A stretch of DNA of 64,000 nt. Origin: Epiperipatus broadwayi. Taxonomy: Eukaryota > Animalia > Onychophora. The position numbers were made by a program, and so were the translations under genes. This document shows, one piece after another, positions 2,501 to 48,159 of this stretch (the first letter of the stretch is position 1; every line of letters begins with the position of its first letter). The notes beneath the pieces were generated by a model, which searched no databases, was not told the origin of the DNA, and was given only the letters and a program-made list of their open reading frames with translations. Location: NCBI GenBank assembly GCA_028023455.1, contig JAQFVV010000008.1, positions 9,362,001 through 9,426,000 on the forward strand, in the 5' to 3' direction.

Positions 2501-4077
2501 TAAATAAGCAAAAACTTTAGGATCTCCTTATTTATATTGTCTGCATCAGCTCTAAAGTGGTATCTGATTATTACTTTCCATGCTTATTTCCTCTTAATTA
2601 TCTTCAAATCAGGTAAAAGAATTTATCAAAATAAAAAAAATTTATTATATTTCAATTATTCTCATATATGGTACTTTGCATTGCAAATATCAAATTGGTG
2701 ACATAAATTCAAATACTTCAGAATTCAAAGGTGATTTATATCAGTATTCAAAAATTGCCTGGAAAATCTACTACACACACAACTAATAACTATATAGTAA
2801 GATTGTAAGTTATTTATTTATAAAAAAAATTTACACAGACTTTTACTATAACTTTAGTTCATTTAAAGATATAATTATATATTATAGATGTAATTTGTTT
2901 TTAATTTTTATTATTGGATTAATTTTTTTAAAGGAAATAAAAAAAATATTTTTTATATATAATCCTATATTTATTTATATTACACAATAAAATTTCTGTT
3001 ACATTTTCTTTGCATATGGTCAAAATACTATGAAAGATGCATTAAGGAGGGGGTGAGAAATAATTCTAATGCAATGGAGTGCATAATTAAGCATAACTGA
3101 GAGAAAATCAGTCATGATAAAAAGAAAAAGAAAGATTTTGAAATATGTTTCTATAAACTTATGTACTGATAAACATTATTTTGGAAGAGTATTCTTCTAT
3201 TGGTAATAAGAAATATAAAGAGCTTAAATAAAATGAAATTGTTGAATGATAAAGTAAAAGATTTATCTTTGGGTGCATATTAAAATCAATTAAAATTAGA
3301 TAGGTTTCTTAATTACTAAAATAAGTCATTAAAATTTATTTAATTTTAATATGTGAATATGAATATACATTTATAAGTAGAATGTGATACATTAAGTATA
3401 TGCTTTTGGAAATTAATTATATTATCTAGATATAAACTAAAATTATTATGAGTTATTAATTTTGAAAGGCTGCATCAATTTGTGGAATATCTGGACTACT
3501 TATGATTCTACTTTACTTAAATGCAATAGAATTAAAAAGAGAGAAAATGAAGAATAATAAGGGGTTTTTTTTTGATAATAACAATTTATAGTTTGAATTG
3601 AGCATAATTAAATGCTATTAGAATGATTTAAAATATTATTAAATGCAAAGTTGTACATGAATTTGTTATGGTGTAATATTGATTAGCATATAATTATCTA
3701 TAATTTGGATTGTCAGTGAATATGTCCATTCATATGATTTAAGAGAATTGACCAAGGATTTATTTTTATTTGCTTTTCATAGACAATATTAACATAGTCC
3801 TGTACTATGAACCTTATTTAGTTAGATGATTGAATTAATAAAATTATAAACATTGTATTGGTAATAAAATAATTTACATTTTGCTATTGAAATTAATGTA
3901 GCCCTGATATATATGTCCATGAAGATGTTATGAGTCATTATTTTATATGGCTTCCATATATTTAAACAATTCAAAATACAGCAAAACTCTCCATATAGTA
4001 GTGCCATCTTGTGCTAACAAGAGCAATCAATGGATGCCAGAAGGCTTGTGCATAAAATCCCTATCTAGTGCCTACTC

Positions 4078-4136
4078 ATCCAATATCCCCAGACTAGTTT
4101 CTGGCTTGTGGCCTTCATCAGTGAGGAGCCTTGGAT
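4078..4136 (-). ncRNA. Type I hammerhead ribozyme, core intact (family 1)
   Basis: Minus strand: atccaa-ggc-tcctca-CTGATGA-a-ggc cacaa gcc-a-GAA-ACTAGT-C|tgggga-ta-ttggat. Stem I is 6+6 bp, stem III is the palindrome ACUAGU, cleavage triplet GUC. Confidence 0.85.
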
Positions 4137-4543
4137 CTGAGAGCACTGCACCTAGATCTTAGGATCTAATGCAACCCTCCAGCACCCACCTTTTAACTCT
4201 ATTTAACTACAAAACTATGAGAATGAAATTGAAAACACTATTAATATTTTCAACCCAAGCTCAATAGCTTATATAGTCATATGGGTCTGAACTCAATTCA
4301 GTACCCATACATTTTGGTGTCTTTGGCTCTTTAACAACCATAGCCACCACTATCCTATTAGGCAGGATTGGTGTTAAACCACTAAACATCACATGATCAC
4401 TATCTCATACTAGCACAATAATTGTTATTAAACAATTCAAAATACAGCAAAACTCTCCATATAGTAGTGCCATCTTGTGCTAACAAGAGCAATCAATGGA
4501 TGCCAGAAGGCTTGTGCATAAAATCCCTATCTAGTGCCTACTC

Positions 4544-4588
4544 ATCCAATATCCCCAGACTAGTTTCTGGCTTGTGGCCTTCATCAGT
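4544..4588 (-). ncRNA. Hammerhead core intact but 5' strand of stem I removed by the inversion junction
   Basis: Core 4558-4587 is identical to 4092-4121; only 1 nt of stem I precedes CUGAUGA. Confidence 0.65.
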
Positions 4589-4934
4589 TAGCACAAGATG
4601 GCACTACTATATGGAGAGTTTTGCTGTATTTTGAATTGTTTAATAACAATTATTGTTCTAGTATGAGATAGTGATCATGTGATGTTTAGTGGTTTAACAC
4701 CAATCCTGCCTAATAGGATAGTGGTGGCTATGGTTGTTAAAGAGCCAAAGACACCAAAATGTATGGGTACTGAATTGAGTTCAGACCCATATGACTATAT
4801 AAGCTATTGAGCTTGGGTTGAAAATATTAATAGTGTTTTCAATTTCATTCTCATAGTCTTGTAGTTAAATAGAGTTAAAAGGTGGGTGCTGGAGGGTTGC
4901 ATTAGATCCTAAGATCTAGGTGCAGTGCTCTCAG

Positions 4935-4993
4935 ATCCAAGGCTCCTCACTGATAAAGGCCACAAGCCAGAAACTAGTCTGGGGATATTGGAT
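4935..4993 (+). ncRNA. Hammerhead ribozyme copy with G8A core mutation (probably inactive)
   Basis: ctcctca-CTGATAA-aggccacaagcca-GAAACTAGTC-tggggatattggat; G>A at 4955. Confidence 0.75.
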
Positions 4994-6300
4994 GAGTAGG
5001 CACTAGATAGGGATTTTATGCACAAGCCTTCTGGCATCCATTGATTGCTCTTGTTAGCACAAGATGGCACTACTATATGGAGAGTTTTGCTCTATTTTGA
5101 ATTGTTTAATAACAATTATTGTGCTAGTATGAGATAGTGATCATGTGATGTTTAGTGGTTTTCCATATATTTAGTTATATTTTATGATTATTGTTTGATA
5201 ATGTGAGCTAAATGATTTTATTAATTAATTTTTATCTATTCAATTGTGTTAGCATTGGAAATATCATAAAATAATTATATGAAATGATTATAATGATTAA
5301 GAAAATTTAAAAACACAATCAAAAAATTATAAGAATAATCTGAGAATTTGTAAAACCTCAGGAAGAAAATTCATTTCCAAAACAATATATATTAAAACCA
5401 TGAACACATACATATAAGTCAAATTTAAAATAGTGTGTTGAGTTACATTAAGGTTCCGAAAATAATTACTGTTAAAGTAATGAATTTGATGGATAAACTT
5501 GAAAGTAAATTATTTAAAGATAAAAAAAAGTTTAAATAGTATAAGCATAAAGAGTTAAACTCATTTAAAATATTTTTATAATCAAATATTATCGCTATGA
5601 AACTGACACATAGAGAAGAGTAACCTTTTTGAAAAAGGTGAATATATTTTGTATATGAATTTGAAATGCTAGATGTGGGATTATCAATTAATGATAGCCT
5701 GTATATAATTTATATATAAATAAATCTGTTGTGATATTTGTTAAACTAGTATTTTCTTATGAGTTGTTTTTTAGTAGTGCTTTAATTTAATGTATAAATA
5801 GAAGAAATTCATAATGCCCAATCTAAGTCAGAAATAATTATACTATATGATGATTACAAAGCAAAATAGAGATGAAGATTAAATTTTTCTTTGTTATTTT
5901 ATGTTATAGTATTAACATAGAATATGGTAACTATAGTGCAATTGTAGAAAACAGAGACATGAGAGTACTTTTGTAAAAGGATTATATTTTAAACACAATA
6001 TAAATCATCTTTTGGGGTTCTGGAAGAACTTGGGATGATCAAATTGGAAATAGTTGTTGAAAAGTATTAGGGAAACATTAAAAGTATAACATCTCCCTAG
6101 CATTTATATATGTACTTATCTTTTGTCCAGCATAACTTTATTTAATCATTATAATATGTATATAAAACATAGTTAGTAAGAAGATAGTAAAATTAACTTA
6201 ACATGAAAATTTTTATTTAAAATTATTTTTTTTTTCATTACTTTATCAGGTGCTGATCTGACTAAATAGTGTTATAGGGTATTACTAGTTGTTCTTCAGT

Positions 6301-6410
6301 TTAAAACAGGCAAAACTCTCCATACAGTAGTGCCACTCAGTGCAAGCCAGAGTAATCAATGGATTCCAGAAGGCTTGTGCATAAAATCCCTATCTAGTGC
6401 CTCTCATCCA
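6301..6410 (-). mobile_element. Family 1 fragment (3' part only, stops before the ribozyme)
   Basis: ttaaaacaggcaaaactctccatacagtagtgcc...ctagtgcctctcatcca matches the unit. Confidence 0.88.
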
Positions 6411-8186
6411 TTGTGGTTACCATTATCATTTTACAATTTTAAAATACAATAAATGCAAATACTTTAAACAACATAATTTATTTGACTATAACTGTAAATT
6501 GACAATTGCCTGAAAACAAGTCTTAGTAGTATGTTTAATTCCCATTATTTGTTTAATGGTAGTTATAGTGCATTTTCTAACTCTAGATGGTATATATACA
6601 TTTATTACTGGAGATTTCAGTGCTGCTAATAATGCATTTGGTAGTTTAAAAAATCACTTTAAATGTGGTATTTTAATTTAATCATAATGCAAATATATTA
6701 AATTCACAATTATATATATATTTGCAAATGACTTTTAGTATAATCATACAATCTAATAGAAGTATCTATTTTCTACTGCTATGATTAATCTTTTCCAAGT
6801 GTATATATGCTATGTTCTCCAACGATAGACAGAGTGGTCAACTAGGTAATGCAGTGTTATGTTTAAAAAAGGACATTTACCAGTGCTACAGCCTGATATT
6901 GTCTGAACACAATTTACTCCATTATTTAAAGTTATTTTATAAATTTAAGACTCTTTGCATCATTTAGATGCTCAATATAATGAAGAATATGAACTATATT
7001 GTATGGCCATATGTTACTACTAGTGCTACTACTACTACTACTATTATTATTTTTATTAATATTATTTTTAAAAAACCTTTAGTGGAGAAGATATAAATTA
7101 AATATATCAATAGGCTTAATGTTTTTGAGAATCTATACCTCATAATTGCACCCTTCATAAAAATATATAATAAAATGTATGCAAAGATATTTAAATTAGC
7201 CAGTGTTATATAGCCCATTTCTTCGAAATCTCGAAGCAAGTATCTTTTTGATTGATAGCATGGATATTTTCATTAATGTAGAATGCTTCTTTTATTTAAT
7301 ATTATTTTTATAAAAGAATATGTTTAATAAATAGTGAACCATAGCATGATATTCCAAACTGAATTGAACAAAATCAAAGCTATTGTTTATATTATACAAA
7401 TAATTATGCATCTGGAAGAATATTCTGACATTTAGATTTCAGAAAATAAATTTCAATCTCTTAGCATAAAAAAACTATACAAAAGTGCAGAGATTTGGTG
7501 AAGTATACATGTATTGCAAAAATGACTTACTTTATTTATAAAGATGAACAAATAATTTCTCACACAAAAAATAATACAAATTATGAAGACAGAATAATTC
7601 TAATCCATATTTTTATAAACATTATTTAATTTTGATTATATCAGAATCTTGAAGTAAATTGTTCAGATACATATAGATGTGAGCCATAAAAAGCAGCTTT
7701 GATTTTGCTCCACAAATACATATGTTAGTGAGAGCTTCTTTGTCTTTTATTTATTAGATTTCTTCTTTGTGATTATTTAAATATTAATTAAGATTATGTA
7801 AAATAAAGATTAAAATTCCCCTGCCTTCATAATTAATATATTGAATGTATGTGTTGTTTATATAATGTTTTTAAAATTAGAGTATTATACCCACAGATGA
7901 AATATTTGTACTGTACATACACACACATGTTTATTAAACTTTTCATTATTTATTTTCTAAGACATTTAAGGAGATATTGATTTGTATGCCATATATCCAA
8001 GTTTTGGAGAACGTATAATAAATAACATCACATGATCACCATTTCTTATGCTTTCTCATAACTGTTATTAAACAGGCAAAAGTCTTCACACAGTAATGCC
8101 ACTCAGTGCAAGCCAGAGTAATCATTGGATGCCAGAAGTCTTGTGCATAAAATCCCTATCTAGTTCCCACTCATTGAATATCCCCA

Positions 8187-8216
8187 GACTAGTTTCTGAC
8201 TTGTGGCCTTCATCAG
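8187..8216 (-). ncRNA. Hammerhead core, intact (G-U wobble in stem II)
   Basis: Minus strand: CTGATGA-aggccacaagtca-GAAACTAGTC. Confidence 0.78.
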
Positions 8217-8636
8217 TGAGGAGTCTTGGATCTGAAAGCACTGCACCTAGATCTCAGGATCTAATGCAACCCTCCAGTGGCTACCTTTTATCTCTACTTA
8301 ACTACAAAACTATGAGAATAAAATTGAAAATACAATAATATTTTCAATCTAAGTTCATTAGCTTATATAGTCATATAGGTCTGAACTCTGTTCAGTACCC
8401 ATACATTTTGGTGTCTTTGGTTCTTTAATAATCATAGCCACTACTATCTTATTAGGCAGGATTGGTATTAAACCACTAAACATCAGACGATCACCATTTC
8501 TTATGCTTGGTCATAACTGTTATTAAAACAGGCAAAACTCTCCATACAGTAATGCCACTCAGTGCAAGCCAGAGTAATCAATGTATGCCAGAAGGCTAAG
8601 ATTTAGGTGCAGTGCTCTCAGATCCAAGGCTCCTCA

Positions 8637-8666
8637 CTGACAAAGGCCACAAGCTAGAAAGTAGTC
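8637..8666 (+). ncRNA. Hammerhead core, decayed
   Basis: CTGACAA-aggccacaagcta-GAAAGTAGTC (G8A, stem III broken). Confidence 0.65.
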
Positions 8667-9069
8667 TTGGAATATTGGATGAGTAAGCACTAGATAGGGT
8701 TTTATATGCATAAGCCTTCTGGAATCCATTGATTACTCTGGCTTGCACCGAGTGGCACTACTGTATGGAGAGTTTTACCTGTTTTAATATGGTGATCATG
8801 TGCTGTTTAGTGGTTTAGTACCAATCCTGCCTAGTAAGATTGTGGTGGCTATGGTTATTAAAAACCCAAAGACAACAAAATGTATGGGTACTGAACTGAG
8901 TTCAGATCTATATGACTATATAAGCTAATGAGCTTAGATTAAAAATATTATTGTGTTTTCAATTTTATTCTCATGATTTTGTAGTTAAGTAGAAATAAAA
9001 TATGGCTTCTGGAGAGTTGCATTAGACCCTAAGATCTAGGTGCAGTGCTCTCAGATCCAAGATTCCTCA

Positions 9070-9099
9070 CTGATGAAGGCCACAAGCCAGAAACTAGTC
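9070..9099 (+). ncRNA. Hammerhead core, intact
   Basis: ttcctca-CTGATGA-aggccacaagcca-GAAACTAGTC-tgggga. Confidence 0.8.
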
Positions 9100-9339
9100 T
9101 GGGGATATTATATTAGTAAGCACTAGATAGGGATTTTATGCACAAGATTTCTGGCATCCATTGATTCCTCTGGCTTGCATTGAGGAGCACTACTGCATGG
9201 ACAAAGTTTTGTCTGTTTTAATATAATAAATAACTGTGATCATAAACATAGATAAGTACTGATATAGTATGAAAATTACATACATCATGACCATCTTCAA
9301 TGAATCCACAGTAAATAAGGTCAAGAACATTATCTAAAC

Positions 9340-10959
9340 ACTAAATCGAAAAACAGAGTATAAATTGAATAAAATTAGAAAAATATTTTGCGGTAATTCT
9401 TGATTGTACTTCAGCTATCAGTTACCAAGAATAAATATACCTTACATTTAGATATGTCTCTCATGGTAAAAAATAAAAATTCAATCCTATTTTATTAAAT
9501 TTATAAAGGTAAAAAGCAGTTCTAGAGAAAATTTATATGTCATGCTGAAGTGAAAAATGAATTCATTAGAATTAAATATTAATAATATCAGGGGAAATGA
9601 TATGATAATGATCCAAATATAAAGAGAAACATTTCTAGAGTTTAGGTTAGACTCTTAAAGGAAAAGTCAAGAGCATCTTTTTCACCTTAGCTCATCACAA
9701 TTATAATCTTATTTTGACACAGTTAAAACTTGTCCTGATGCATTAACTTTCTTTAGTATACTTCAATACCTTTATATTTTATCATCATCATTCACAAAGA
9801 GTTTGGCAATTTTCCTTAAATATGTTAAAGGTTTTACTATGAAACCTGTTTGCAATATAAGATAGGAATGTCACATTCAAAGTGTTAAGGCAATAAGGTA
9901 TGAAGGAAGTGCGGTCTATAATGCACTTCTTGAAATATCAGCAACATTAGAATTTTCTCAAGTAAAAAGTAATCCAGAATCACTTGTAAATCCAGTAAAG
10001 AATTCCAAGTTTATAGTATCCCTCTTTTTTTTTTTTTTTTTGATATGATTTACTTTTATAGATAAACTTTGTTAGCAAGGAACTTCAAAGTGATTCTGTG
10101 GATCTTTCATAATACTTTCTTCATTTGAAAAACCATTATGTTGGTTGACAAAATACAGGGATGCTGGGTTCAAGTAAATGTTAGTTGAGGCAAAATGCTC
10201 ACAGAAGATTTGGAGATAATTTCAGAATTTTAAAATAAAAGGTTGATTATATATTTTAGTTATGAAGTCAATGATAAGCTAATTTTTAATCCTGCAGAAC
10301 TATTCAAAGTATTTCTTTTTAAATGTAGTTCTGAATAAAGTAAAACAATTATTGCAAACCCAATTTGAACATTTGAGAAATCTTAAGGATTTATTTAGAT
10401 TTTTGGAAAAATTTTGAAAAATAGAAAAAGGCAAATTAATTTCATAAAGGAGATGGATTTAGATGGCAATATGTTGGTCAATGAAATTGAAGTCCTAAAA
10501 ATTATTCTTTCATTAGATATTATGGAAAGCCTTTTAAAGTGTTTCATTCTGGCAGAAAATGGTAGAGGTACAGTTTTTTCTGATCTTTTCATTACTCTTT
10601 AGATATATTTAACTATGCTAGTGTCTGTTGCTTCAGGAGAAAGAATATTTTCTTGGTTAAAATTAATAAAAAAATATTTACGGTCAATATGATTAAAAAT
10701 AGTTTAGTGATCCAATCTATTGGAAAGTCAAGAAGCATGGTAGTTAGATTTTGATTCAATTTTGGAAAACCAAAAGCTAGAAAATGTTTTATTTTGCTTC
10801 AATATAGATGATATATATAAATTATTTAAATTATATTATTCGATTACTAATTTTTTTTTTATTAAAAATATGTACTTATTTGTAAAAGTTTAAGCCACAT
10901 TTTGAAAGATCCCACAAAAAATATCCATTTAGGCCTCACACTAACTGAATCCAGTCCTG
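9340..10959 (+). mobile_element. Decayed hAT DNA transposon (ZMYM1/DUF4371-type transposase, 3' two-thirds plus right TIR)
   Basis: Broken translations: ILDCTSAIS..TFRYV (~9396-9460), NIRG.(Y)DN (~9585), KPVCNIR*ECHIQSVKAIRYE (~9843-9903) and dimerisation motif LTMLVSVASGERIFSWLKLIKKYLRS (~10610-10687). The end taggcctcacactaactgaatccagtcctg resembles a CAGGGCCGGATT-type TIR. Confidence 0.75.
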
Positions 10960-10977
10960 TCTATAATATAAGCAATT

Positions 10978-11303
10978 ACCATTTGTATTTAAGAACAAAG
11001 ATTTAATTGAAATTATTGTAACCTTTTTATCTTATAAATCTTTGATTATGATAAATTGTTTTTATTTCATATTTTAAAATATAATTCTTAATTTTTCAAG
11101 AACTACATACTTATTGCTGTTTTTTTTTACAAATGTATATACCATTTGTATTTAAGAACAAAGGTTTAATTGAAATTATTGTAACCTTTTTATCTTATAA
11201 ATCTTTGATTATGATAAATTGTTTTTATTTCATATTTTAAAATATAATTCTTAATTTTTCAAGAACTACATACTTATTGCTGTTTTTTTTACAAATGTAT
11301 ATA
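10978..11303. repeat. Near-perfect 163-bp tandem duplication
   Basis: ccatttgtatttaagaacaaag...acaaatgtatata starts at 10979 and 11142. Confidence 0.95.
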
Positions 11304-11697
11304 CTTTTAATAAGAAATATATGTATATTTAAAAAGTGTATTACATAGGTCGCTTTTGTATTGTTGTTGTTATTATTATTGTTATTTATCTCGGTGTTAT
11401 AGATATTGAATTGTGTTTTTTTTTTTAATATATAAATTTAATTTAAGAATAAAAAATCATTTGTAATTCTACTGCAATACATATATTTTTGCCTTGTGGA
11501 TTTAAGATCCAAAGATCCCAGAATAGATTTTTTTTACTTATAAATAACAGATGTAATTTTATTTCTACTATAGCTTATATTAGTTAATGACTCATATAAT
11601 AATTACAATCAACAATAATTGGGTATTTGTGTTAATTATATAGTCTCCCAGTTGTTTTAAGTTTGGCATAGGCTATTATTTAAATTGTATTAGATTT

Positions 11698-11991
11698 AAT
11701 TATAAATACTAATTATTATAAATTCGTTATACTATTAAGAAAAGCTAATGGTTAATATTCATTACTTTTACATTGCACTAAGCCATGTAATAGGCATAAT
11801 TTTAAACTGGTAAATAAAAAAACAGCACTACGATTCTGGCAGTGTCTGCCAAAAGCATGCTTAGTGCAATGTAAAAGTATCGAATAATAATTATTGCCTT
11901 TTCTTTACACTCGATTATAACGAGTTTATAATAATTACAATAATTAAAGAAAAGTGAATTAAATATCATTTAGAATTATAAATACTAATTA
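11698..11991. repeat. Fold-back (arms ~11711-11784 / 11859-11935) flanked by an 18-bp direct repeat
   Basis: tacttttacattgcactaagc vs gcttagtgcaatgtaaaagta; AATTATAAATACTAATTA at 11698-11715 and 11974-11991. Confidence 0.75.
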
Positions 11992-12325
11992 AAATTATTC
12001 AATGAATATTTAAAATTAACTAAACAATTGTTAATAAAAGTCCCTTTTAAAAATTGCTATATTTATTTTTATTATTCCACTGTTGTTACTTAGTTAATAA
12101 TTTTAAACCTATGTAATAATACTCACTTAAAAAATATTTATTGTTTAATTGAAATCAATTTTAAATGTTAAAATACAACGAAGGATTAGACATAACAAAC
12201 CATAAAATTCCTTATTTCTAATAGAAAAATATACTATAATTACATAAAAATTAAGAACAAAAGCTTCCAGAAGTCTTTATTATTAAGAACTATCCTATAT
12301 AAGTTAGAGAACCCAAGTCACCAGC

Positions 12326-12667
12326 ATGTATAGGTACTGAACTGAGTTCAGATCTATATGACTATATAAGCTAATGAGCTTGGATTGAAAATATTACTGT
12401 GTTTTTAATTTAAGTCTCATAGTTTTGTAGTTAAGTAGAGATAAAAGGTGGCTGCTGGAAGGTTGCATTAGATCCTAAGATCTAGATGCAGTGCTCTCAG
12501 ATCCAAGGCTCCTCATTGACGAAAGCCACAAGCCAGAAACTAGTCTGGGAATATTGGATGAGTAGGCACTAGATGGGGATTTTATGCACAAGCCTTCTGG
12601 CATCCATTGATTACTCTGGCTTGCATTGAGTGGCAATAAGTATAGAGAGTTTTACCTGTTTCAATAA
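12326..12667 (+). mobile_element. Family 1 partial monomer with C3U-mutated hammerhead (core 12516-12545)
   Basis: ggctcctca-TTGACGA-aagccacaagcca-GAAACTAGTC-tgggaatattggat inside continuous similarity to the unit. Confidence 0.88.
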
Positions 12668-21426: not shown

Positions 21427-21556
<130 letters not shown>

Positions 21557-32000: not shown

Positions 32001-33928
32001 ATGAAAAGAAATTTAACCTCATCTTTCAGACCTTATTCAAGAAGCTTAGATTATTAATTATTGAATTAAATAAAGATAATTACTAAAAAAAAAAAATTTC
32101 CAGTTTTATAATTCACTTAAAGATATTTAAGCATAACAAAACTAGTATGAGGCAAGAAAATTCAAATTCAAAGGTCATAGATCATCCTAAAAAGAATTTT
32201 ACATGAAGGAATACAAGTTAAAAAATACAGTAGCAACCTGATTATAAGATAAACATTTTCAAAAGGGGAAAGAGTAATTTTATATTTTTTATGCATGCTG
32301 CTTAGAATTTTATTAAACTTGAATAAATATTAATAACCCTTGGTGTGCATATGTTATGAAGTAGATTCACATTTAACTAATCTTTTGAATCATTGATTCA
32401 AAATATTCATTGGGAGTTATAAAGATAATTATGCATACATTTGTGCATATGTTTAATTGTATGAAGATATATTTGTTTTGTTTACACACACACACACATT
32501 TATACTTTGTCTATGCTGAAGTAAAATATTTATATATTTATTAATTAATATTTTGACTGCTATTTTATATATATATATAATTGATAAATGAACATAGTTT
32601 AGTTAGAAAGTATTTTATACATTATAAAAACCTATATAACATTCAGTATTAATATTACTTTTGTAAATGTTAAAAGAATATTATTCAAATTTTTTAAAAA
32701 AAACATGATATCTAAAATATTGTTTTTAGTGAGATGAAATATAAAAAGAAATGATATGGCTCATAACATAATAGTTACATATGCATCTGTCATGCCAACA
32801 ATCTGTGCTCAAATCAGTTCCAGGTGAATCTTAATATTTTTTTTTTAGATTACAAACTGGTTTGAGATTTTTCTTTCAGGTAAATGACTACTATTAGACC
32901 TTCTAATAGTGGTCAGTAAAAGGGTATTTTGCTATTCTTAGAAAATAAAAACCACAGGTTAGTTTAAATTAGTCAGATAAATATCAACATATTGTCTGTA
33001 AAAATACAATTGATATATATATAATCTATAGAATGGATACAGATATTGGGTCTGAGGTTACTTTACCTTTTCTATATATATATAAATAAACACAATATTG
33101 CTATTTCAAAACAGATAATTCTAAAAGAATGTGTGTCTTCAAAATAAATTATTATGTTTTTAATGAAGAAATTGATTTTATTATGGGAAATTTCCAATTA
33201 CTATAAGGATTCAAGGAAGAACTTTAAAATTAATAAAAGATTCAAGAGGTAGAATTTTTTGAATTAATAAATGTTTATATATATAATCTGCACCAACAAA
33301 AAAATTATAAAATAAAACATAATGGAAAATAAATATTAGTATCAAGTTTTAAGTGTCAAATTTTTATTTTATGAATAATTGCAAATATATTCTATATATG
33401 TTAGTATATACGTATGTAATTCTATGTGTTAGCATAAAATTGAAGTAAACAGTATATGTATCTATGTTTTAGAAGCAATACAGTGTGCATGGATAGCATG
33501 AAATGTAAGTAAGCAATAGAAGCTTTATTGAACTTATAATATTCCTTTTTAAAAAAATTAAAAGATTTAATATTACAAAGAAGGAACAACCCCTCCAGTC
33601 TTAAGAATCTCCTTGCACTCACCCATGAGGGATTAGATATGTAGGATGTGCTATATAAATAACAGAATATTTATTAAAAATAAAAGATTTAGTTAAAAAA
33701 ACAAGTCAATAAGATTTTGATTATCTGCCATGTTAATAAATCATAATAGAGATTTTATATTAAGAATGATATTTATAATAACTGAAACACAGGTTTATTA
33801 TATACCTATGTCTATATATGTAATATATAGGGTATATGAGCACAGACTTTCACATGACCCACCACTCTTCACTCTATCTCATAACACTGATACACTTGAA
33901 CACATATATGTCGAAAAGATAACTAATT

Positions 33929-33972
33929 ACCAATAAACGTATTTCATGCTAAACCAGCAATCATCAGTTGGT
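33929..33972 (-). ncRNA. Type I hammerhead ribozyme (family 2), core intact
   Basis: Minus strand: accaa-CTGATGA-t-tgct ggttt agca-t-GAA-ATACGTTT-A|ttggt. Stem I is 5 bp; the two-arm consensus of stem III is the palindrome AUACGUAU. Confidence 0.7.
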
Positions 33973-34251
33973 TTAGATTACCATCTCTACACATATATGC
34001 TATAAGTGCTTAGATATATATTAAGATAGCCAATCTTCATACTTTAATGGACAGGCTTCAATCTACTCCAACTCTTCAACCATCCATCCAATTTTGGATG
34101 GACGGTTGAAGAGTTGGAGTGTGGAGTAGGATGGGGAGTTGAAGAGTTGGATGTGGAGTAGATTGAAGTCTGTCCATTAAAGTATGAAGATTGGCTATCT
34201 TAATATATATCTGAGCACTTATAGCATATATGTGTAGAGATGGTAATCTAG

Positions 34252-34295
34252 ACCAACTGATTATTGCTGGTTTAGCATAAAATACATATATTGGT
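34252..34295 (+). ncRNA. Family 2 hammerhead, decayed (G8U, G12A)
   Basis: accaa-CTGATTA-ttgctggtttagcat-AAA-ATACATAT-A-ttggt. Confidence 0.6.
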
Positions 34296-35339
34296 TATTA
34301 GTTATCTTTTCAACATATATGTGTTCAAGTGTACCAGTGTTATGAGATAGAGTGGAGTGTGGTGGGTCATGTAAAAGTCTGTGCTCATATAACCTATATA
34401 TTAATGATATTTATATTTAAATAATAAATAGTAATTGCAACCAATAATCAAATGGTTTTATTGCTCAGGAATTCATAAGTAGTGTTAGTCTGGAAGTTCT
34501 AGAACTGAAATTGATGTGAGACTTGTGCTCCAGAATCTGATGTTCTACTACTGCACTAAACCACATAGAGCTTTGCAACCAATAGCAATTGGTGAAGTGT
34601 AATATGATCTGTGAGGAATAAAAATATTTTTGTGAAGAACATGATCTATGAAAATAGCATACATCATAAAAATATGATGTACATTTAAATACAAAAAAAG
34701 ATTGCTAGCCTCAAGTGATAAGACTAGATTATCAATAGGAAATAAAAAATGATCTTTCTGTGAAGTATACAATATAATAGTTATAACATCTCTAGTGCTG
34801 TGATATTACACAGGTCTTAAGATTTGCCAATTAGTTGATTTGGATCATCAGCAAGCAAGATGATTGTCTCAAGATTGGTGAACTAAAATTTATATTAGAG
34901 ACAGAATTGATCATTTATGTTTTTATAGTCTATAAATAAAGTTGTTTAAATGTATATATGTGAACAGGTGTACAATGTGAAATGACTGAAAATAGTATTG
35001 TTAAAGTTTTGGCTGAATTATGTAATTATGGTAAATTAGATTTAATTTTAATTTATTTATAAACACAGTTGCCTATATACTTAGATAATTTACTGATAAG
35101 AAATTAATGATAAATTTAAAGTAATTACAGTTATTTTATATATTTATGTCACTTAAAATTTGAGATTAAGGACATAAACTGTTGACATTTTTGGTAAGTC
35201 AACACTTATAGAATCAGGTACAGGAAAGCATCTGCCACATTCATAATAGCAAGATAGTAATGAAAATATCTTTGTTAGATATATTATCAAATACTTTTTT
35301 TTGTAAAAGATAATTTTTAATAACAATCTATTTTTTGCA

Positions 35340-37230: not shown

Positions 37231-37373
37231 TATATGGTGAATTTTGAGAGAAAATCAAATTCTCTCTCACATTTATAATAAAAATTCTGTCTGTATTAAC
37301 TTATTTGATTGATTCTCTTTATTTAGTCATTAGTAAATCTTTGTTACTGTAAACAATGATCAAATAAAAAAAA

Positions 37374-39619: not shown

Positions 39620-39940
39620 AAAACAAGCTTCATTTTATAAAAATCTTCAGCGTATTCTCTTAATAAAAATTATCACTATTGCATTTCTTTGAAGTGTCTT
39701 TGGGGTAATATTTATATGTAAATGGATTCTGCTCCTCCATAAAAATCATGCTTAAATTTACCAGAAAATATATTTTTAGGAAATCTATTACCATTTAGTT
39801 ATTTCATATGGCCATCATAATCAAGATTTGCTTTTACAATGGTGGATTGCATTTTTAGAATCTTAAAAAGCATTCTTAAATGCAAATTTTCTAGTAATTT
39901 TAACTCAAGAGTCCATATCTTATTTCCATACAAAAAATTA
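39620..39940 (-). mobile_element. Decayed RTE/BovB-like LINE C-terminal fragment
   Basis: Minus strand gives LYGNKIWT..LENLHLRMLFKIL, GHM...NRFPKNIFSG. Confidence 0.5.
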
Positions 39941-40239
39941 TATAACTATATATACAAGTATGATATTATTGTTAAATGAGCAACAGTACATTAGAATCTA
40001 TGTTACACCTCAAATTCCAAGTCTAATATTTATACCTAAAATATATATTTAAATAGTTCATTTGCTCAAACTATAAGCATCCAGGATAAAAATTACTGAA
40101 TAAGTTGCTTTAAATGTTAACTGATAAAACAGTTTTTTGAAAATTATTTATTAAGACAAAGTATTTATAAATTGTATTCAAAACATTAATAGCATTATGC
40201 AGATCATCTTTTGAATAAGTAAGAGTTACACAATCATTA

Positions 40240-41110
40240 GCATTAAGAGTCGTATCATGAAAAATAATATTGTACTCCTATTTAATGAATGGTGATGACA
40301 TTTTTTATATGGTAGTGATGATACTTCAAACTGATGGAGGGAATATTTTGATCACCTTTTGAATAATGACAATCAAAAATGAAAAGAATCCATCATATTC
40401 CAATTTGTTTAGATTTGGACATAAATAACAATCTTGATGAAGTTAAAGCAGCTCTTTCTAATCTTAAAAACAAATAGACTGAAAGTCTTTACAGGATATT
40501 TAAAGAAGTTTTGAAATTGGTTGATGATACAATTATCTTGAAAACTATTGGAATTTCTTATGATTATATGAAAATATGAAGTTATGCCATCTGATCTTAA
40601 GGATACTTCTATTATTCCAATTTTTCAAAAAAAAAAGATTAAAAAATTATAATTACCATGGAATATCATTATTGTCCATTATAGAAAATGTCAAGGACAT
40701 TGCTGAATAGATTATTTACAATAACAAATGAGTCATTACCAGAGACTCAGCATATTTTTAGAAAATTAAGTATTGTAATCCTAATTATTGTTGCTTGGCA
40801 ATACAAAAGCATAATTTATATATTGCTTTTGTTAAGAAAGTTAAATTATTTTATTCAGTGATTTTGTAGTAGAGTTTAAAATTTTCTGGGTGTGCATGAA
40901 AAAATGAAAGAAAGCATCATTATTGCCAATGCAAAACTGAACACACTTGAAATGAAAATTGGTGTTGAACAGGATTGTATATTATCTACAATTTTGTTTT
41001 CCACTTTAATAACAGTGGTCTTTGAAATAACATATAGAGAGCTTCATGAAACAAGTATCAAAGATGTAATAGATATGATCATAAGAATCTTAATTTGGAT
41101 GTATTAAAAA
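40240..41110 (+). mobile_element. Decayed RTE/BovB-like reverse transcriptase fragment
   Basis: EYFDHLLN, DEVKAALSNLKN, IIPIF, NYHGISLLS, LPETQ and GVEQDCILSTILF (the GV.QG..LSP.LF motif). Confidence 0.65.
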
Positions 41111-41187
41111 CAAAATCAAAAACTATATCTTTTTTTTTTTTTTGGTCTGAGATTGTATATGGTATGATTGTTTTTGCTCTTGTAAAT

Positions 41188-41390
41188 TCAAAGAACAATC
41201 TTCAGAATAGAGACTTTAATTTTTATATTTAGGTGCTTTTGACTAAGATTATTAACAACTTGCCAATGTGTTCCATTTTCATCATATTGGTAGAAACTTA
41301 AGTAGAAAGGCAAACATGGATGTAGAGGGCAATGAAAACTCCTATCTATTGTTACATTTAACAAATTAAAATTAGAGCTCTGTATCACAA
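41188..41390 (-). mobile_element. Possible RTE thumb-region fragment in the opposite orientation
   Basis: NVTIDR.., (F)GKL, SQKHLNIKIKVSILKIVL resemble ID.EI..RI.KA...FG.L...VW...I...TK..VY..VL. Confidence 0.35.
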
Positions 41391-41994
41391 TTATATTACT
41401 TCTTCAACTAAATTAGTTGCTAATTTATTGATTAAAAGTGAGACATAGATCATCTGTCAATTTAAAGGTGCTGATTTTTTTATTATTATTTAAAAATGGT
41501 CTCCAGTTCCCTAAAAACATGATAGTATATGTTATATAGTCTACTAAGTGTGATAATATTGAATCTACATTTGTAAGGGCATGACTCTATTGGAACGAAC
41601 ATGTAAGACAAATGATAAGTATTAGATTTCATATAAAATTATATCATAGTAAACTTTAGTATAGATTTTGTGAAAGAGATAGTTTTCATTAATGCTATAA
41701 TGATTGCATTCATTTAATATACAAGGCTGAGGATAATAAACAATGAAGAGAAATGATTTGATAAGGTATTAAAGAATTTTTAGAAGAATAAGTTGGTCGA
41801 AGATGAGCTTAAAATATGCCAGAGCAGCATATCAAATAATCAATCTAAAAAATTAGTATACAATATATATATATATATGTGTGTTTCATAAATTGGTTTG
41901 TACAGGTATTGCAAGATTAGTTTTAATTTCTTTTTCTTTATCATTTGATTTTTAATTTTTGTGGAATTTGATGCTAATAATAGTACTTTAACTA

Positions 41995-42092
41995 AGGCAA
42001 AGCTCTCCATACAGTAGTGCCATCGAGTGCAAGCCAGAGTAATCAATGGATGAACCAGTAATAGTGATCATGTGATGTTTAGTGGTTTAATA
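41995..42092. mobile_element. Miniature head-to-head composite of family 1 3' ends
   Basis: aggcaaagctctccatacagtagtgcc..aatcaatggatg (41995-42052) is followed by the inverted agtaatagtgatcatgtgatgtttagtggtttaata (42057-42092). Confidence 0.8.
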
Positions 42093-43369
42093 ATACTTTA
42101 ATATTGTTTACTTATGATATTTAGTAATCCAGTGTTAGAACAGCAATGTTCTCTGCTCAGAATTTTGATTTTTTTTTTTTTTTACTAAGTTCATTGCATT
42201 ACACCATAAGTAATTAAAACTTTAAAATATTTTACTTTTTTCATACTCAATGTTTGTCTCTCTTCATAAAAATTTCTAGCTTAATTTGTTCTATTTATTT
42301 ATATATTTTTTATATTACATTAAGCAGGTAATCCATATAACGTTTTTAGCATTTTTATCAATAGATGCTCATTTTTCACTTTTAATTCATTATGTATTGT
42401 AATTTTATTATATTATTTATTTTTATTTTTTTAACTAGGTTAATGATTATAAATTTGATAGAATTATTTGTGATTTAAATTATTATTGTATAACTGCAGT
42501 TCACATAGAATTCCTATACAGTCTCACAAAACATTTTTTTTTTTTATTCACTAGTTGAAATGACAGTATGATATACAGTTAGTTATAAGCAGAATATAAG
42601 CATTTTCACATAGGAACAATGATTTTTATTTGTCACAATTGATTACCTTCTGTGCTGAACAAATTTATGAAGAATGGGGGGGGGGGGACTTCAGGGCAAA
42701 ATCTCATAAAAATAATGTTAATAATATTTGATTGGGACTGTAGACAATAAAAGTATAGTATTTACTTTTATATAATGACAATAATAAACTTATGTTCTAT
42801 AAGATTTTAATATAGTATGCTAGGCATATATTTATTTAAAAACCTAAATAAAAGATGAGGATTAATAAGCATGAATGTTTTATGTGAAATAATAATATAA
42901 CTATAAAAACAAGTTATGAATTGAAAAACATACACACATGAACTTATTATACAATGTTTTAAAAAGCACTCATATCGTTGCTGTTTTAATACATAGTTTT
43001 GAAATTAGCAATATTTTATTTTCAAATCTAAAATTACTATTAGAAAGTGAATTGTTTTCTTTGATATAACAAGAGAGATTGCAAATTTAAAATGGTATAT
43101 ATGTGTGTGTGCAGTTTTGTTGTATGCATAAAGAAGCAAAAGTACATGATTTTTACCACTTTAAAACATGAAAAAGGTATGTATATATACAGGATCCTCA
43201 AAAACAAAGTATCTTGAAATATTTATTAAGTATGTAAATATATATCCAATAAAACTTATATTTATTCTTTTGAATAGTTTAGTTGTTGGATTATTAATAT
43301 ATGGTTTTTGATCAACATATGAAGTGGCATAAAATTATAAATTTATATATTAGTGTATGTATTGTCTAT

Positions 43370-43840
43370 TAGTAGTAGTTGATAGGTTCCTGGCAACATC
43401 AAAAGGCAAAGTTATCTCTTTTTATGAGGATATAACCTCTTAATTTTCATTCTTTATTAAAACTAAACATCCATGAAAAAATATAAATTCATCATATACA
43501 ACTCTCTTGAGAAGGTTAATTATTATTTGAAGAATGTCAAGGAAAATGCTATTTTTCTGTTTTCTGATACTTATAAAAATAGTTTTCTGAGTTTAAAACA
43601 TTGTAAGAACTTAGATTTGAAGTGAAAAAGATTCTCTTTTACTTCAATAAACTCCAAACAAGTGAGCTATTATAAGTTAATGAAGAAAACTTGTTTAGCT
43701 TCATGATGATTGTCAGTTAGTAATAATTGATAGTTTCCTGGCAACATCAAAAGACAAAATTATCTCTATATACATAGATATAATCTCTTAATTTCCATTC
43801 TTTATTAAAACTAAACACCCAAGAAAATATATAAATGTGA
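43370..43840. repeat. Diverged ~110-bp direct repeat, period 348 bp
   Basis: cctggcaacatcaaaag..ttatctct..cattctttattaaaactaaaca at 43389 and 43737. Confidence 0.85.
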
Positions 43841-44669
43841 TATATATTCAATCCATAAAATTGAATTTTAAAATTTGTTTTGAAATATAAACATTTCCAT
43901 CAATTAGAAGTTTACTTTACCTGAATAAACTTTCATTAAAATTATATTTTCATGTAGCCTTTACTTTCAATTGATCACTTTTTGTTTGGTCTCATAAGTA
44001 GTATCTACATTCATTTTACCTTTGATCATTTTCTATTTAAATTGTAAATATATCTATTTATTTTAAGTTTAGATATAATAGTTATAGAAAATTCAAATAC
44101 CTAATATAATTTTGCAAATGGTCATCAAAATTTTTAAATGATACTTTTTTATATATTTTTATTTTGTGCATTGTTGAAAGAATTTTATTTTGTAAGCTTC
44201 TCATCTTTGTTTTGGTTTCATAAAGCAGTGATGCTTTTTATTATCCTTCAATTATTTAAACATGATCACGTAAAAATATGTTAAATGAAGACATATTTAA
44301 AGAAGATCCTCCACACAAGTAATAAATCTCTTGTTAAAACAAGATTTTCACTAAGTATTTTTATTAACTTGAAATAAAATAAGTGTTGTATTTAGAATTA
44401 TTTTTGCAATTCCTGGTATAAATAGATATGTTGACTTTATGCTATCACCATATGTATATTTTTTTCAAATTTATTATAATTTTAAATAATCTATTGAAAT
44501 AGAAAATCCTTTATATTTTGTTACCTTTGTACTGTATTTGATAAGAGTGTACAACAAGTAATTCCATATTTCCAAAACTTTTTACAGCACTTTTATGAGA
44601 AGTAATTTTTTGATTTTATAAAATGGAAAGTTGAGGGAATAATAAATGAATGAAAATTAGCTAAATCAA

Positions 44670-45100
44670 TTATATTTCACTGATGATGTGGTTATTCTTG
44701 CAAATAATGCTTCTAATAATGTCCCCAACATTATCAGATAAAAGCAAGAGTGTGTTTCTAAAGATAACTGGTAATGTTTAATGCTTTTTCTCAAAAGAAA
44801 AATGGATGTTCATGAATTACAAGAAGACAATAATTACAAATATTTTTAATTCAGATGGAAACATAATGAATGAAAATTGTCATAGAAATAAATTTGAATG
44901 AAAAAGAAAATATGTCTATATGTTTTAAAAGGAAGGTTTTTAATAGATGTTTTCCCATTTCTTATATATGGATTTGAGACTTGGATATTAAACAGAATTG
45001 CAAAACAGAGACTTTAGATTACATAATGAAATATGGAGGATTGTATGTTGGGAATAACAAGGAGGAAATGAAAGCAAAACATCATGAATGAATTAACAGA
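44670..45100 (+). mobile_element. Decayed RTE fragment (same family as 51-54 kb)
   Basis: FTDDVVILANN; cagatggaaacataatg, gaaaatatgtctat.tgtt..aaaaggaaggtttttaata and tgagacttgga are shared with 53270-53640. Confidence 0.75.
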
Positions 45101-45949
45101 CAAGTATCATGTATTAGACCAGAGATTATCCACTTAATGAATACTATTTCTATAATGCAATTTTCACTACATAACTCACTTTTAACTTCTTGTTGAGAGT
45201 GTAATCATAAATATATGATTGTAATCCTAGACATATGACCAAAAACATGTCTTTGATCATATGTTTATAATTAAACCCGTCCACAAGCTGTTAAAAGTGG
45301 GAAACCAGTCCCTACCTTGCATGAGAGAGGTGTAGGGAAAATTATACTACAGAATATTATTCATTAAATATTATTGACATCAATAAAAGAATTTAGAATC
45401 AGATATGAAGCTGAACTGGATATATTACTAGAATAGATGATAAAGTAAAAAATAATTCAAGTTTTAAACATGATTCCAAGGGATTTTTGAAAAAACTAGA
45501 AAATGTTCGTATATGAGTTGGATGAATAAGTAAATTTGTTAATGTAATGTGAAGAATAAAAATTATGGCCAGGAATCTGGATTAAACTTGGAGATACTTT
45601 TATCATGTAGTGAATCAGTAATTGTTAAAAATGATGATGGCGATTTAATTATATAAGTGATCTTTATACTATTAGAACTTATATTTATTTGATCTATTAT
45701 TTATCTTAATCATGCAAACTTTATAAAACTTCTATTTGCAGTTGTATTAATTAGTATAATTTGCATTTTATATTATTCGTATCAGCTATATTTATTTACC
45801 GTCATATAAATTTAGTTTGTTTTTTAAAAGGAAAAAAAAACAACAAAAAAACATTATTTTTGGAAATATAGTAGTTATGTGAAAAGGCTCCTTAAAATAT
45901 ATGAAGCAACTCTGAAACTATAATGTTTGAAGTACCACTGAGGATGATA

Positions 45950-46750
45950 AAATATTCTCTTCGCCGCCGTAATATTAAACTTTATCAGCTAATTAGTTAT
46001 TCAATTTGTTCGATAAATAACATATACACACATGTATATATAGTGTAGGTCCTACAGATGTAACAATTGAAAGTTAATATAAACGAATGAATGTTACACA
46101 TTCCTTTTACAGTAAATAAAAGAAAAAAGCTTTTACTATCAGGCCGTTAAGTTTTCCTTGCAATATCTTCCTAATTATTCCAGAATTACTTCACAATAAT
46201 TGAGAAAAGATTCCAGCTAAGCTCTTCGGTTGTTTTGCCAATACGTGATGCCCTTTTCTGTTATAAATAACTGTTTTTTTTACTCTTTCAAAAATAAATG
46301 TGTTAACATTTTATGTTGAGATTACGATAAATTTTGTTGATAATTTCCTGTGAAAGTTGATCGAGAAGATATCAAGTCTACGTACTAAAATTGATTGTCT
46401 CTTCTAATTACTTGATAATAAAATATTTAAAAAAATCTTTCTACAAAAGCTACAGTAAATAAGAAAATACTCCATCTGTCGAAAGAAATATGCATTTCTA
46501 TTTACAGATAAAATTTGAGTGTAAATATAGCCACACCTTTTTTCATTAGAATTAGATTGCTAAAACTGTTAATTATATTATACTTTATAGAGCTTTCAAA
46601 TCACATGTAATTTACTATATGTGTAAATTTACACTCACATATAGATATCAGTGTTAAGTCCTCCTTAAGAGTAAATTAGTTTGAATGTTATAGATATTAT
46701 GGATACGAAACAATGATAAAAATCGTATTTTTTAATGCTTGTTTGTGTTT
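45950..46750. promoter_or_regulatory. CpG-retaining patch
   Basis: ttcgccgccgt, gttcgat, ggccgtt, ttcggtt, tacgtg, gatcgag, ctacgtac, gtcgaaag cluster. Confidence 0.35.
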
Positions 46751-47533
46751 TTTAAAGGCCTTATGGTATGGGGATAGAACAACAATCTGTGTTTTAATGT
46801 GGGCTGGTTAAAACAATTTTTTTCCAAGTTTAGAATTTTTCTTTTAGATAGCCAGTCTAGTGCCAATATAAATTAACCATCCAATACTGGTCAGTAAATG
46901 GATATCTAACTATTTTCAGCTAAATAATAGAAAAAGAATGGGAAATAACTCATATTCTAAGCAGTCAATAATTGGAAAAACTGGTGAATAATGTCATTCA
47001 CTTAAGATGCCTCTATGGGGGATTGTTGAAAAGATCTTTGTTTTGTATTATTTAAAAGTTATGTTGACTTTTATCTAGATATGTTATATTATATAAATAA
47101 AGTTACTTTTAATATATTGTACTTATTTATCATATAATCAAATGGGTGGTGGTTTATTACCATTGTTGCACATTACCACAGGATAGCATTATGTTACCAA
47201 AAGTCATAAACTATTAATTTGTGAATTATGTTTATTATTTATGAACATATTTATTTGTATAAATATAATTATAAATGAATAAAATAATAATTAATAACAA
47301 ATTTATCTGTGATAAACATTATTTACATCAATCAAAAATGCAATGCATAAATCTTTATTTTGACTCTTCTTTAAATTTTTCCAACACAAATGATTGAAGT
47401 TGATTGGAAAAGTTTTCAAGGTGTTTTTTTTCCTTTTTTTTAAGATTTTATATTGATTACCAACTAAGAATGTTCAATGATCATTCATCTATGTATTATT
47501 CAGCCAGTTGCTCACTCATTTTCAATAAAAAAA

Positions 47534-48159
47534 AAAACAGGCAAAACTCTCCATACAATAGTGTCACTCAGTGCCAACCAGAGAAATCAATGGATGCCAG
47601 AAGGCTTGTACATAAAATCACCATCTAGTGCCTATTCATCCAATATCCCCAGACTAGTTTCTGGCTTGTGGCTTTCATAAGTGAGGAGCTTTGGATCTGA
47701 GAGCAATTCACCTAGATCTTAGGATCTAATGCAACCCTCCAGCAGTCACCTTTTATCTTTACTTAATGACAAAACTATGAGAATAAAATTGAAAACACAA
47801 AAATATTTTCAATCTAAGCTCAATAGCCTATATAGTCATATGGGTCTGAACTCAGTTCAGTACCCATATATTTTGGTATCTTTGGCTCTTTAACAACCAT
47901 AGCCACCACTATTCTATTAGGCAGGATTGGTGTTAAACCACTAAACATTATATGATCCCCATTACTTATGCTAGCACATACCTGTTATTAAAACAGGCAA
48001 ACTCTCCATACAATAGTGCCACTCAGTGCCAACCAGAGTAATCAATGGATTCCAGAAGGCTTGTGCATAAAATCCCCATCTAGTTCCTACTCATCTAATA
48101 TCCCCAGACTAGTTTCTGGCTTGTCGCCTTCGTCAGTGAGTAGGTTTGGATCTGAGAGC
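47534..48159 (-). mobile_element. Family 1 direct tandem (~1.4 units, period 455) with two hammerhead motifs
   Basis: Core 47652-47681 reads CTTATGA (G5U, dead); core 48107-48136 reads CTGACGA-aggcgacaagcca-GAAACTAGTC (intact). Confidence 0.9.
48107..48136 (-). ncRNA. Hammerhead core, intact (one stem I mismatch)
   Basis: Minus strand: cctactca-CTGACGA-aggcgacaagcca-GAAACTAGTC-tgggga. Confidence 0.75.

Follow-up and report, generated by a model that had tools for sequence, protein, structure and literature searches.

A probable high-copy family of non-LTR retrozymes with Penelope-like insertion anatomy in Epiperipatus broadwayi

The window analysed here, 64,000 nucleotides of contig JAQFVV010000008.1 (assembly GCA_028023455.1, forward-strand positions 9,362,001 to 9,426,000) from the onychophoran Epiperipatus broadwayi, carries dispersed copies of one non-coding sequence unit. 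As reference we took the 466-nt unit at 4557 to 4092 of the minus strand, which starts right after the GUC of a hammerhead motif, has a GC content of 38.8% and contains no stop-free run longer than 68 amino acids; a tRNA-like or Pol III head of the unit was considered and ruled out, as ARAGORN finds none. BLAST with this unit recovers copies at 3962–5161, 6301–6410, 8024–9219, 12303–12667, 41995–42092 and 47534–48159, with periods of 466 and 455, in agreement with the locations and the 455–466 period given in the preliminary description. The word "tandem" used there holds for the 466- and 455-nt repeats within arms but not for the arms themselves, which at the full loci are only ~1.2–1.35 units long and inverted head-to-head. 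Tandem Repeats Finder reports no ~460-bp array within the window because each arm is shorter than two units and the arms are inverted.

The copies differ in completeness. Insertion A is bounded by a 13-bp target-site duplication, TTCCATATATTTA, recognised as the longest common flank string at 3952–3964 and again at 5161–5173. Its left arm (3962–4591, minus strand, 97–100% identity to the unit by BLAST) covers unit 433–466, one full unit and then the sequence up to position 130, a sharp 3' end that we call E1-type; its right arm (4587–5161, plus strand, from BLAST and the core search) covers unit 74–466 and then 1–182, an E2-type end bearing the "tail", and the two overlap by 5 nt at the centre. 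The apex of a hairpin, AATTGTT-TAAT-AACAATT (unit 119–137; 4421–4439, minus strand), coincides with the sharp E1 terminus, and by eye older subfamilies still have the hairpin, with C-G replaced by T-A. Insertion B (8014–9234) belongs to an older subfamily, at 82–88% identity to the young unit, and consists of a minus arm at 8024–8597 with an E2-type end at position 173 and a plus arm at 8596–9219 with an E1-type end at position 117, between 13-bp duplications, TATAATAAATAAC, at 8014–8026 and 9222–9234. The remaining copies, all identified by BLAST to the unit, are a lone minus-strand fragment at 6301–6410 (unit ~10–120, E1-type terminus), with neither partner arm nor duplication recognised at the locus; a single plus-strand arm at 12303–12667 (unit 223–466, then 1–122, E1-type end); a miniature head-to-head insertion without ribozyme at 41995–42092, whose minus arm spans unit ~56–111 (E1) and plus arm unit ~141–184 (E2); and a single minus-strand arm of the 455-nt subfamily at 47534–48159 (unit 414–466, one full unit, then 1–119, E1-type end), also supported by the core search. 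Upstream of this last arm, on the minus strand at 48567–50030, there is a decayed ORF region with a GIY-YIG-like motif.

The complete hammerhead motif was read directly, and found by core pattern search, at 4078–4136 of the minus strand, in the order AUCCAA-GGC-UCCUCA / CUGAUGA / A-GGC-CACAA-GCC-A / GAA / ACUAGUC, cut, UGGGGA-UA-UUGGAU. All the parts named in the preliminary description are there: stem I (UCCUCA/UGGGGA) with its AUCCAA/UUGGAU extension, stem II (GGC/GCC) and the palindromic ACUAGU. The invariant bases C3, U4, G5, A6, N7, G8, A9, G12, A13 and A14, the A15.1-U16.1 pair and H17 are likewise in place, and the predicted cut lies after GUC, between 4092 and 4091. Of the three helices, II and III are capped while I is open: helix I is 6 bp long and runs on into a rod of ~65 bp, helix II has three Watson–Crick pairs above a basal A.A, and helix III, with 2 bp and a 2-nt loop, forms only between two copies and not in the monomer. 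When two copies are cofolded, ACUAGU gives a 6-bp intermolecular helix III. With so short a helix II and no helix III in the monomer, ribozyme activity may be weak. The preliminary description called the hammerhead "minimal"; under the nomenclature of PMC4209133, it is instead a canonical metazoan type-I hammerhead of the dimer type, with a 2-bp palindromic helix III, and putative as regards activity.

A search with the pattern CTGATGA-N13-GAAACTAGTC, allowing at most three mismatches, finds nine cores in the window (4092, 4558, 4950, 8187, 8637, 9070, 12516, 47652 and 48107) against 0.17 in shuffled sequence, at the positions reported earlier. On direct reading every invariant core base is kept in five of the nine, 4092, 4558, 8187, 9070 and 48107, as had been claimed. 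As its arm is cut short at that point, core 4558 has no 5' strand of stem I, and core 48107, in the arm at 47534–48159, carries U7>C, a change at the single free core position, and is otherwise intact. Among the others, core 4950–4979 in the right arm of insertion A is broken by G8>A, core 12516 by C3>T and a stem II A.C mismatch, and core 47652, also in the 47534–48159 arm, by G5>T; in insertion B, 8637 is broken and the two flanking cores are not.

The expected match to the Rfam covariance models for Hammerhead_1 and its relatives failed to appear: Rfam release 15 reports no hammerhead on the whole window at the gathering score, nor on 10 kb or 121 nt at E<=10. We infer that motifs with a short, dimer-type helix III are a known blind spot of Rfam, and we put the missing match down to a limit of the models and do not count it against the motif. 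The failure of Rfam to see a canonical-type hammerhead whose helix II has A.A at its base matters for the annotation of this genome and others like it.

The copy number sought in the preliminary description is high: in the 5.6-Gb genome, the pattern CTGATGA-N11-15-GAAACTAGTCTGG has 59,187 exact matches and its reversed control none, and pure 466-nt arrays are found genome-wide. Median divergence from the window unit is 0.57% among 34 insertion loci that we fetched, where arms reach 9 or more units. The sequence is also present in 15 runs, every one of them Logan contigs and none recorded as RNA. The features described for non-LTR retrozymes are present, namely non-coding tandem units within 150–970 bp, a type-I hammerhead in each, no LTR, PBS or PPT, and a low-GC, strongly self-paired RNA as computed from the 466-nt unit; the sense strand folds into a stable rod (MFE -166 kcal/mol, z -7.09) and the antisense strand gives -108 kcal/mol (z -3.1). 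The class itself was already known (PMC7229834), as the preliminary description said, and the exact motif strings have no match in the literature searched. Together, these observations make it probable, at about 0.8 in our estimate, that the repeats are a high-copy and very young non-LTR retrozyme family of 455–466 nt, mobilised by Penelope-like elements and with a predicted hammerhead in each unit, as the earlier reading of a non-coding, retrozyme-like family had proposed.

The anatomy of the insertions bears most directly on mobilisation. Full loci are head-to-head pairs of 5'-truncated arms flanked by a target-site duplication, 13 bp long in insertions A and B; duplications of 9–17 bp, with mode 13, occur in 30 of the 34 fetched loci. 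In the two-armed set (n=33, that is, 32 fetched loci and insertion A), the left arm is always antisense and the right arm sense, with the 3' ends outward, and one end always lies at unit ~130 and the partner end at 164–195. The sharp end falls at the hairpin apex, with a histogram peak at unit 130–133, and the second lies 40–60 nt beyond it, forming the "tail". Central junctions have 0–10 nt of overlap or a short filler, and between fixed outer ends the inner breakpoints and arm lengths vary from one locus to the next. Five arms seemed at first to start exactly at the cleavage site, as an in vivo footprint of cleavage would require; this reading was rejected, since the apparent filler (GACT, GACTAGTTTCTG and others) is further unit sequence into which the BLAST alignment did not reach. 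Penelope-like insertions have an inverted 5'-truncated copy and a tail of 30–40 bp at one end (PMC8557442); measured against that account, all 33 two-armed insertions show the inverted 5'-truncated copy at the 5' end, a partial tandem and a one-sided tail. Judged from sequence, this anatomy is the signature published for Penelope-like insertions, and with the 9–17 bp duplications it bears out the earlier proposal of copying by a Penelope-type reverse transcriptase. A possible source is at hand, as PF01541 (GIY-YIG) matches above the curated cut-off lie in open frames of 782–901 amino acids elsewhere in the genome, several of them in tandem or inverted pairs; from these GIY-YIG frames we take autonomous Penelope-like elements with putatively intact RT-EN ORFs to be present.

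The insertions bear no footprint of cleavage: none of 66 arm ends lies at the predicted site. An improbable alternative is a non-autonomous element, dependent on Penelope machinery, that has inherited a hammerhead as a relic it no longer requires; unprocessed linear multimers would be the sole templates, and no circular RNA would be made. The fixed termini would suit it. So would the variant units: counted from the outer ends, their order is concordant between arms in 30 of 44 comparisons against 24.5 +/- 2.2 when permuted (p ~0.01), which suggests a linear multimer that has a single 3' end. A linear multimeric template explains the fixed 3' termini and the concordant order no less well than a monomeric circle does. 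Hammerheads of the Penelope type also cleave poorly in vitro (PMC4209133). The pattern of conservation speaks for a ribozyme in use, however: no other module of the unit is as well conserved across subfamilies as the core with its rod, with 30-mers of the 466-nt unit found in 22,261 copies for the core and 28,041 for the adjacent rod as against 6,122 for the tail and 3,853 for the middle; core and flanking rod are 4–7 times more conserved than the remainder. In four other organisms core variation keeps to the free position 7, with U7>C as the sole frequent variant. Stem covariation across copies was among the checks named in the preliminary description, and stem II covaries with its helix preserved: the pair adjoining the core is G-C in 22,261 copies, A-U in 6,071, A.C in 932 and G.U in 691 (odds ratio ~210), a single fixed double change, inherited by subfamily and thus confounded with lineage. 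For stem I, ten decayed copies aligned across the cleavage site contain little informative variation. Finally, a mismatch at the foot of helix II does not keep related retrozymes from cleaving as dimers and forming circles (PMC7229834).

The likeness of retrozymes to Penelope pseudo-LTRs is established, and it was also conceivable that the copies form no separate family but are the pseudo-LTR termini of 5'-truncated autonomous Penelope-like elements, the arm at 47534–48159 lying downstream of the decayed ORF region. We regard this as very unlikely. The ORF pieces of that relic are not recognised by Pfam, and a 53-aa piece matches a huge family, some members of which lie in frames of 500–760 amino acids, with no tie to the Pfam-confirmed GIY-YIG loci. 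In 40 other copies the relic family ends at window position 48567, 407 nt short of the arm, and the adjacency is therefore not a conserved junction. Moreover, all 34 fetched insertions are self-contained, made solely of 466-nt units with no ORF, where the preliminary description would have been undone by copies that were all termini attached to Penelope-like ORFs. Still less probable is an element moving at the DNA level, either a satellite multiplied through segmental duplications or a foldback or MITE-like DNA transposon whose arms are long and inverted. Inverted repeats of 523 nt at 99% complementarity, together with the direct repeats that flank them, recall one, but arms that differ at each locus between fixed outer ends, duplications of varying length, flanks unique among the fetched insertions and an invariable 3'-ends-out orientation argue for target-primed reverse transcription and not for cut-and-paste or duplication.

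The preferred reading, a Penelope-mobilised retrozyme, places the family among published metazoan non-LTR retrozymes (PMC7229834; bioRxiv 10.64898/2026.07.22.740005), and closest to the axolotl HHR_Amex2 family (PMC7229834). It shares with these retrozymes non-coding tandem units of a few hundred nt with one type-I hammerhead each and, judged here by sequence, a 2-bp palindromic helix III that would act in dimers. Further points in common are a rod-like, self-paired, GC-poor RNA, duplications exceeding 4 bp, copies numbering in the tens of thousands and the presence of Penelope-like elements in the same genomes. The mismatch at the helix II base is U.U in axolotl but A.A here, with a U-A variant subfamily in addition, the unit is 466 nt long against 170–400 nt, and the systematic head-to-head, one-tail anatomy finds no mention in PMC7229834. 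With Penelope-like elements (PMC8557442) the family has in common partial tandems, an adjacent inverted 5'-truncated copy, a tail at a single end and a hammerhead in a repeated terminal region; it differs in having no RT/GIY-YIG ORF and only 466 nt in all, a tail of 40–60 rather than 30–40 nt, and arrays of 9 or more units per arm. The minimal hammerheads of Penelope pseudo-LTRs (PMC4209133) resemble ours in the palindromic 15.2–16.2 positions and loop 3, the extra nucleotide between A9 and 10.1, G10.1-C11.1 (in the main subfamily here) and, presumably, the dependence of activity on dimers. They combine a long helix II with a short helix I, whereas here helix I has 6 bp and an internal loop and helix II is short, with an extra A on its 3' side.

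A cycle consistent with these observations would begin with transcription of multi-unit arrays. Adjacent hammerheads, to go by the motif and its published relatives, would pair through ACUAGU, become active as a double ribozyme and cleave behind GUC, and the monomers would fold into stable rods that may be ligated into circles. The RT/GIY-YIG endonuclease of an autonomous Penelope-like element would then copy the RNA into a staggered cut of ~13 bp, with cDNA synthesis primed at both DNA ends, leaving two 5'-truncated, head-to-head arms with 3' ends outward; it is for this step that the insertion anatomy speaks. One arm would begin at the fixed hairpin apex at unit ~130 and the other 40–60 nt downstream, giving the "tail", and arms of 9 or more units would require a template that is either multimeric or a circle copied by the rolling-circle route. 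Tentatively, and with more doubt than confidence, we suggest that the two-terminus rule and the shared unit order may record Penelope integration itself, both nicked strands priming on one multimeric ribozyme RNA at two initiation sites.

Overall, the retrozyme class and its link to Penelope are already published, and the present family adds a further member. What it brings is an exceptionally large set of young insertions, with about 59,000 ribozyme cores and a median divergence of 0.57% among the fetched loci, whose uniform anatomy is mechanistic evidence for Penelope mobilisation independent of the published arguments from similarity and co-occurrence. The two cDNA start sites per insertion constrain models of template choice by the Penelope reverse transcriptase and of the origin of the "tail". 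If the tentative model of integration is true, the 466-nt element would offer a minimal substrate, provided by nature, with which to reconstitute Penelope retrotransposition.

Nine hammerhead ribozyme cores, five of them intact, had been claimed for the window in the preliminary description, and both numbers hold. The pattern CTGATGA-N13-GAAACTAGTC, with at most three mismatches, matched nine times against 0.17 expected from shuffles; by direct reading, the cores at 4092, 4558, 8187, 9070 and 48107 retain all invariant bases, the last with U7>C, and the remaining four are mutated (G8>A, C3>U or G5>U). Copies were mapped by BLAST with the 466-nt noncoding unit, taken from the window itself (4557 to 4092, minus strand, its first base just after the predicted cut), and three older window units as queries, and lie at 3962-5161, 6301-6410, 8024-9219, 12303-12667, 41995-42092 and 47534-48159. 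The motif at 4136-4078 (minus strand) reads AUCCAA-GGC-UCCUCA / CUGAUGA / A-GGC-CACAA-GCC-A / GAA / ACUAGUC, followed across the predicted cut by UGGGGA-UA-UUGGAU; unit and motif had thus been described accurately. An Rfam search for the hammerhead, suggested there as a check, gave no match at any threshold. Tandem Repeats Finder detected no array of the 466-nt unit in the window, because the arms, the unit stretches forming each insertion, hold just 1.2-1.35 units each and are inverted; the window's inverted arms are 523 nt long and 99% complementary.

Judged from its letters, the motif has the geometry of a 'canonical' metazoan type-I hammerhead: helix I spans 6 bp before an internal loop, helix II is short, and helix III has just 2 bp, capped by a very small palindromic loop. 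Canonical type-I motifs of such geometry are known to cleave as dimers (PMC4209133), and a cofold of two copies predicts an intermolecular ACUAGU helix III of 6 bp. Helix II begins with an A.A pair, where HHR_Amex2, the ribozyme of an axolotl retrozyme, has a U.U mismatch; cleavage by HHR_Amex2 is weak in the monomer and efficient in the dimer (PMC7229834). Among the first 100 genome matches, one subfamily has U-A at the A.A position and another has A-U replacing the next G-C. Genome-wide, this next pair is G-C in 22,261 copies and A-U in 6,071, against 932 with A.C and 691 with G.U. Covariation in stem II across copies is clear, but it amounts to essentially one fixed double change. The sense monomer is predicted to fold into a rod, with unit positions 1-65 paired with 370-436, at -166.1 kcal/mol (z -7.09) against -108 kcal/mol (z -3.08) for the antisense, an asymmetry that points to G.U pairs and to selection on the RNA.

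The family is abundant in the source assembly (5.6 Gb in 18,588 contigs; the window's GC content is ~25%). The genome-wide BLAST search foreseen as a copy-number check gave at least 150 matches to the unit at 97-100% identity, many in pure 466-bp arrays. In exact counts on both strands, with reversed-pattern controls of zero throughout, CTGATGA-N11-15-GAAACTAGTCTGG occurred 59,187 times, the young 30-nt core 22,261 times and a rod 30-mer just 3' of the predicted cut 28,041 times, and 30-mers from the tail region and mid-unit 6,122 and 3,853 times. Given the excess of core and rod, the ribozyme and adjoining rod form one module common to several subfamilies, of which the young 466-nt subfamily contributes roughly 4,000-6,000 units. 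In four runs (four organism labels, four studies, none recorded as RNA), contigs contained ~100-nt pieces by the thousand, 90-100% identical, with depth peaking within 60 nt either side of the ribozyme and falling to zero across unique flanks, and the family is thus high-copy in related taxa as well. The sole frequent core variant in these four organisms is U7>C, position 7 being the single hammerhead core position free to vary.

We fetched 34 independent genome loci with flanks (0.66-5.8 kb long, median difference from the window unit 0.57%), and 30 carried flanking direct repeats of 9-17 bp, exactly 13 bp in 13 of the 30; window insertions A (3952-5173) and B (8014-9234, an older subfamily) each have a 13-bp duplication. 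With insertion A included, 33 insertions are two-armed, and every one pairs a left-hand antisense arm with a right-hand sense arm, the 3' ends facing outward and the 5'-truncated ends joined centrally, either overlapping by 0-10 nt or linked by short filler. This is the arrangement that reverse transcription primed from both nicked strands of one staggered cut would be expected to produce. In every one of the 33, one arm stops within unit 119-142, these ends peaking sharply at 130-133, and the end of the other is spread diffusely over 164-195. The sharp terminus coincides with a hairpin apex, AATTGTT-TAAT-AACAATT, kept in older subfamilies as CTGTT-TTAAT-AACAG with a C-G/T-A difference, a by-eye comparison of low weight. 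In the plus arm of insertion B (8740-8800), an internal unit lacks ~33 nt from the hairpin apex to ATGGTGATCATG, most of the tail segment that extends beyond the sharp end; this gap may have been left by a template jump at the very position that sets the insertion end.

As for the template, an HHR-cleaved linear monomer self-primed at its 3' end is excluded, since none of the analysed insertions has an arm starting or ending at the predicted cleavage site; an apparent enrichment of arm ends there was a BLAST artefact. For the same reason, the insertions neither prove nor disprove cleavage. Lineage variants were found in every unit of both arms in 16 cases, and variants confined to part of the units fell on matching units of the two arms, numbered inward from the outer ends, in 30 of 44 instances (24.5 ± 2.2 when permuted, p ~0.01). 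This concordance favours, in at least some events, a heterogeneous multimeric RNA template with a defined 3' region. Quasi-periodic variant patterns (e.g. X o o X o o) run through some long arms (L037:5224-5721 and L059), and a single unit carries 32 inserted nucleotides at unit position 119; template switching or a higher-order repeat structure of the source array may account for these features.

Close to the arm at 47534-48159, on its minus-strand upstream side (higher coordinates), the minus strand at 48567-50030 holds a decayed ORF region that includes a GIY-YIG-like motif (…VIYNISCPQTGCSTTHYGETKN…). A conserved junction between the two was rejected: in 40 other genomic copies of the relic family, similarity breaks off at window position 48567, which leaves 407 nt to the arm, and Pfam did not recognise the relic's short ORF pieces. 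We read the adjacency as coincidental nesting. The relic's family is very abundant, with 2,547 first-look DNA candidates and 41,214 candidate matches to a 53-aa piece, some within 500-760-aa open frames. Elsewhere in the genome, Pfam GIY-YIG domains occur in open frames of 782-901 aa, some as tandem or inverted pairs, and these mark candidate autonomous Penelope-like elements. The window also holds a second, unrelated head-to-head palindrome of ~630 bp (33765-34415) within a 13-bp duplication (AATGATATTTATA), each arm with a hammerhead-like core, CUGAUGA-U-UGCU-GGUUU-AGCA-U-GAAA, that has U.U at the helix II base and is mutated in the plus arm (CTGATTA). Other features are a fragmented LINE-like relic at 51583-53578 (plus strand), whose ORF pieces give sub-threshold Pfam matches to Exo_endo_phos_2 (E 7e-4) and RVT_1 (E 4e-3), a pair of 128-nt copies 348 bp apart at 43361-43836 (86% identity), a two-copy tandem duplication of 163 bp at 10977-11304 (98% identity) and a perfect (TAT)40 microsatellite at 21427-21546.

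Non-LTR retrozymes are an established class (PMC7229834), to which the 466-nt family adds a member. That retrozymes are nonautonomous Penelope derivatives is argued in a 2026 preprint on the basis of co-occurrence and similarity to pseudo-LTRs (10.64898/2026.07.22.740005). Both texts are silent on inverted arms, on tails and on the anatomy of target sites, and the insertion scars therefore provide independent, mechanistic support for retrozymes as nonautonomous derivatives of Penelope elements.
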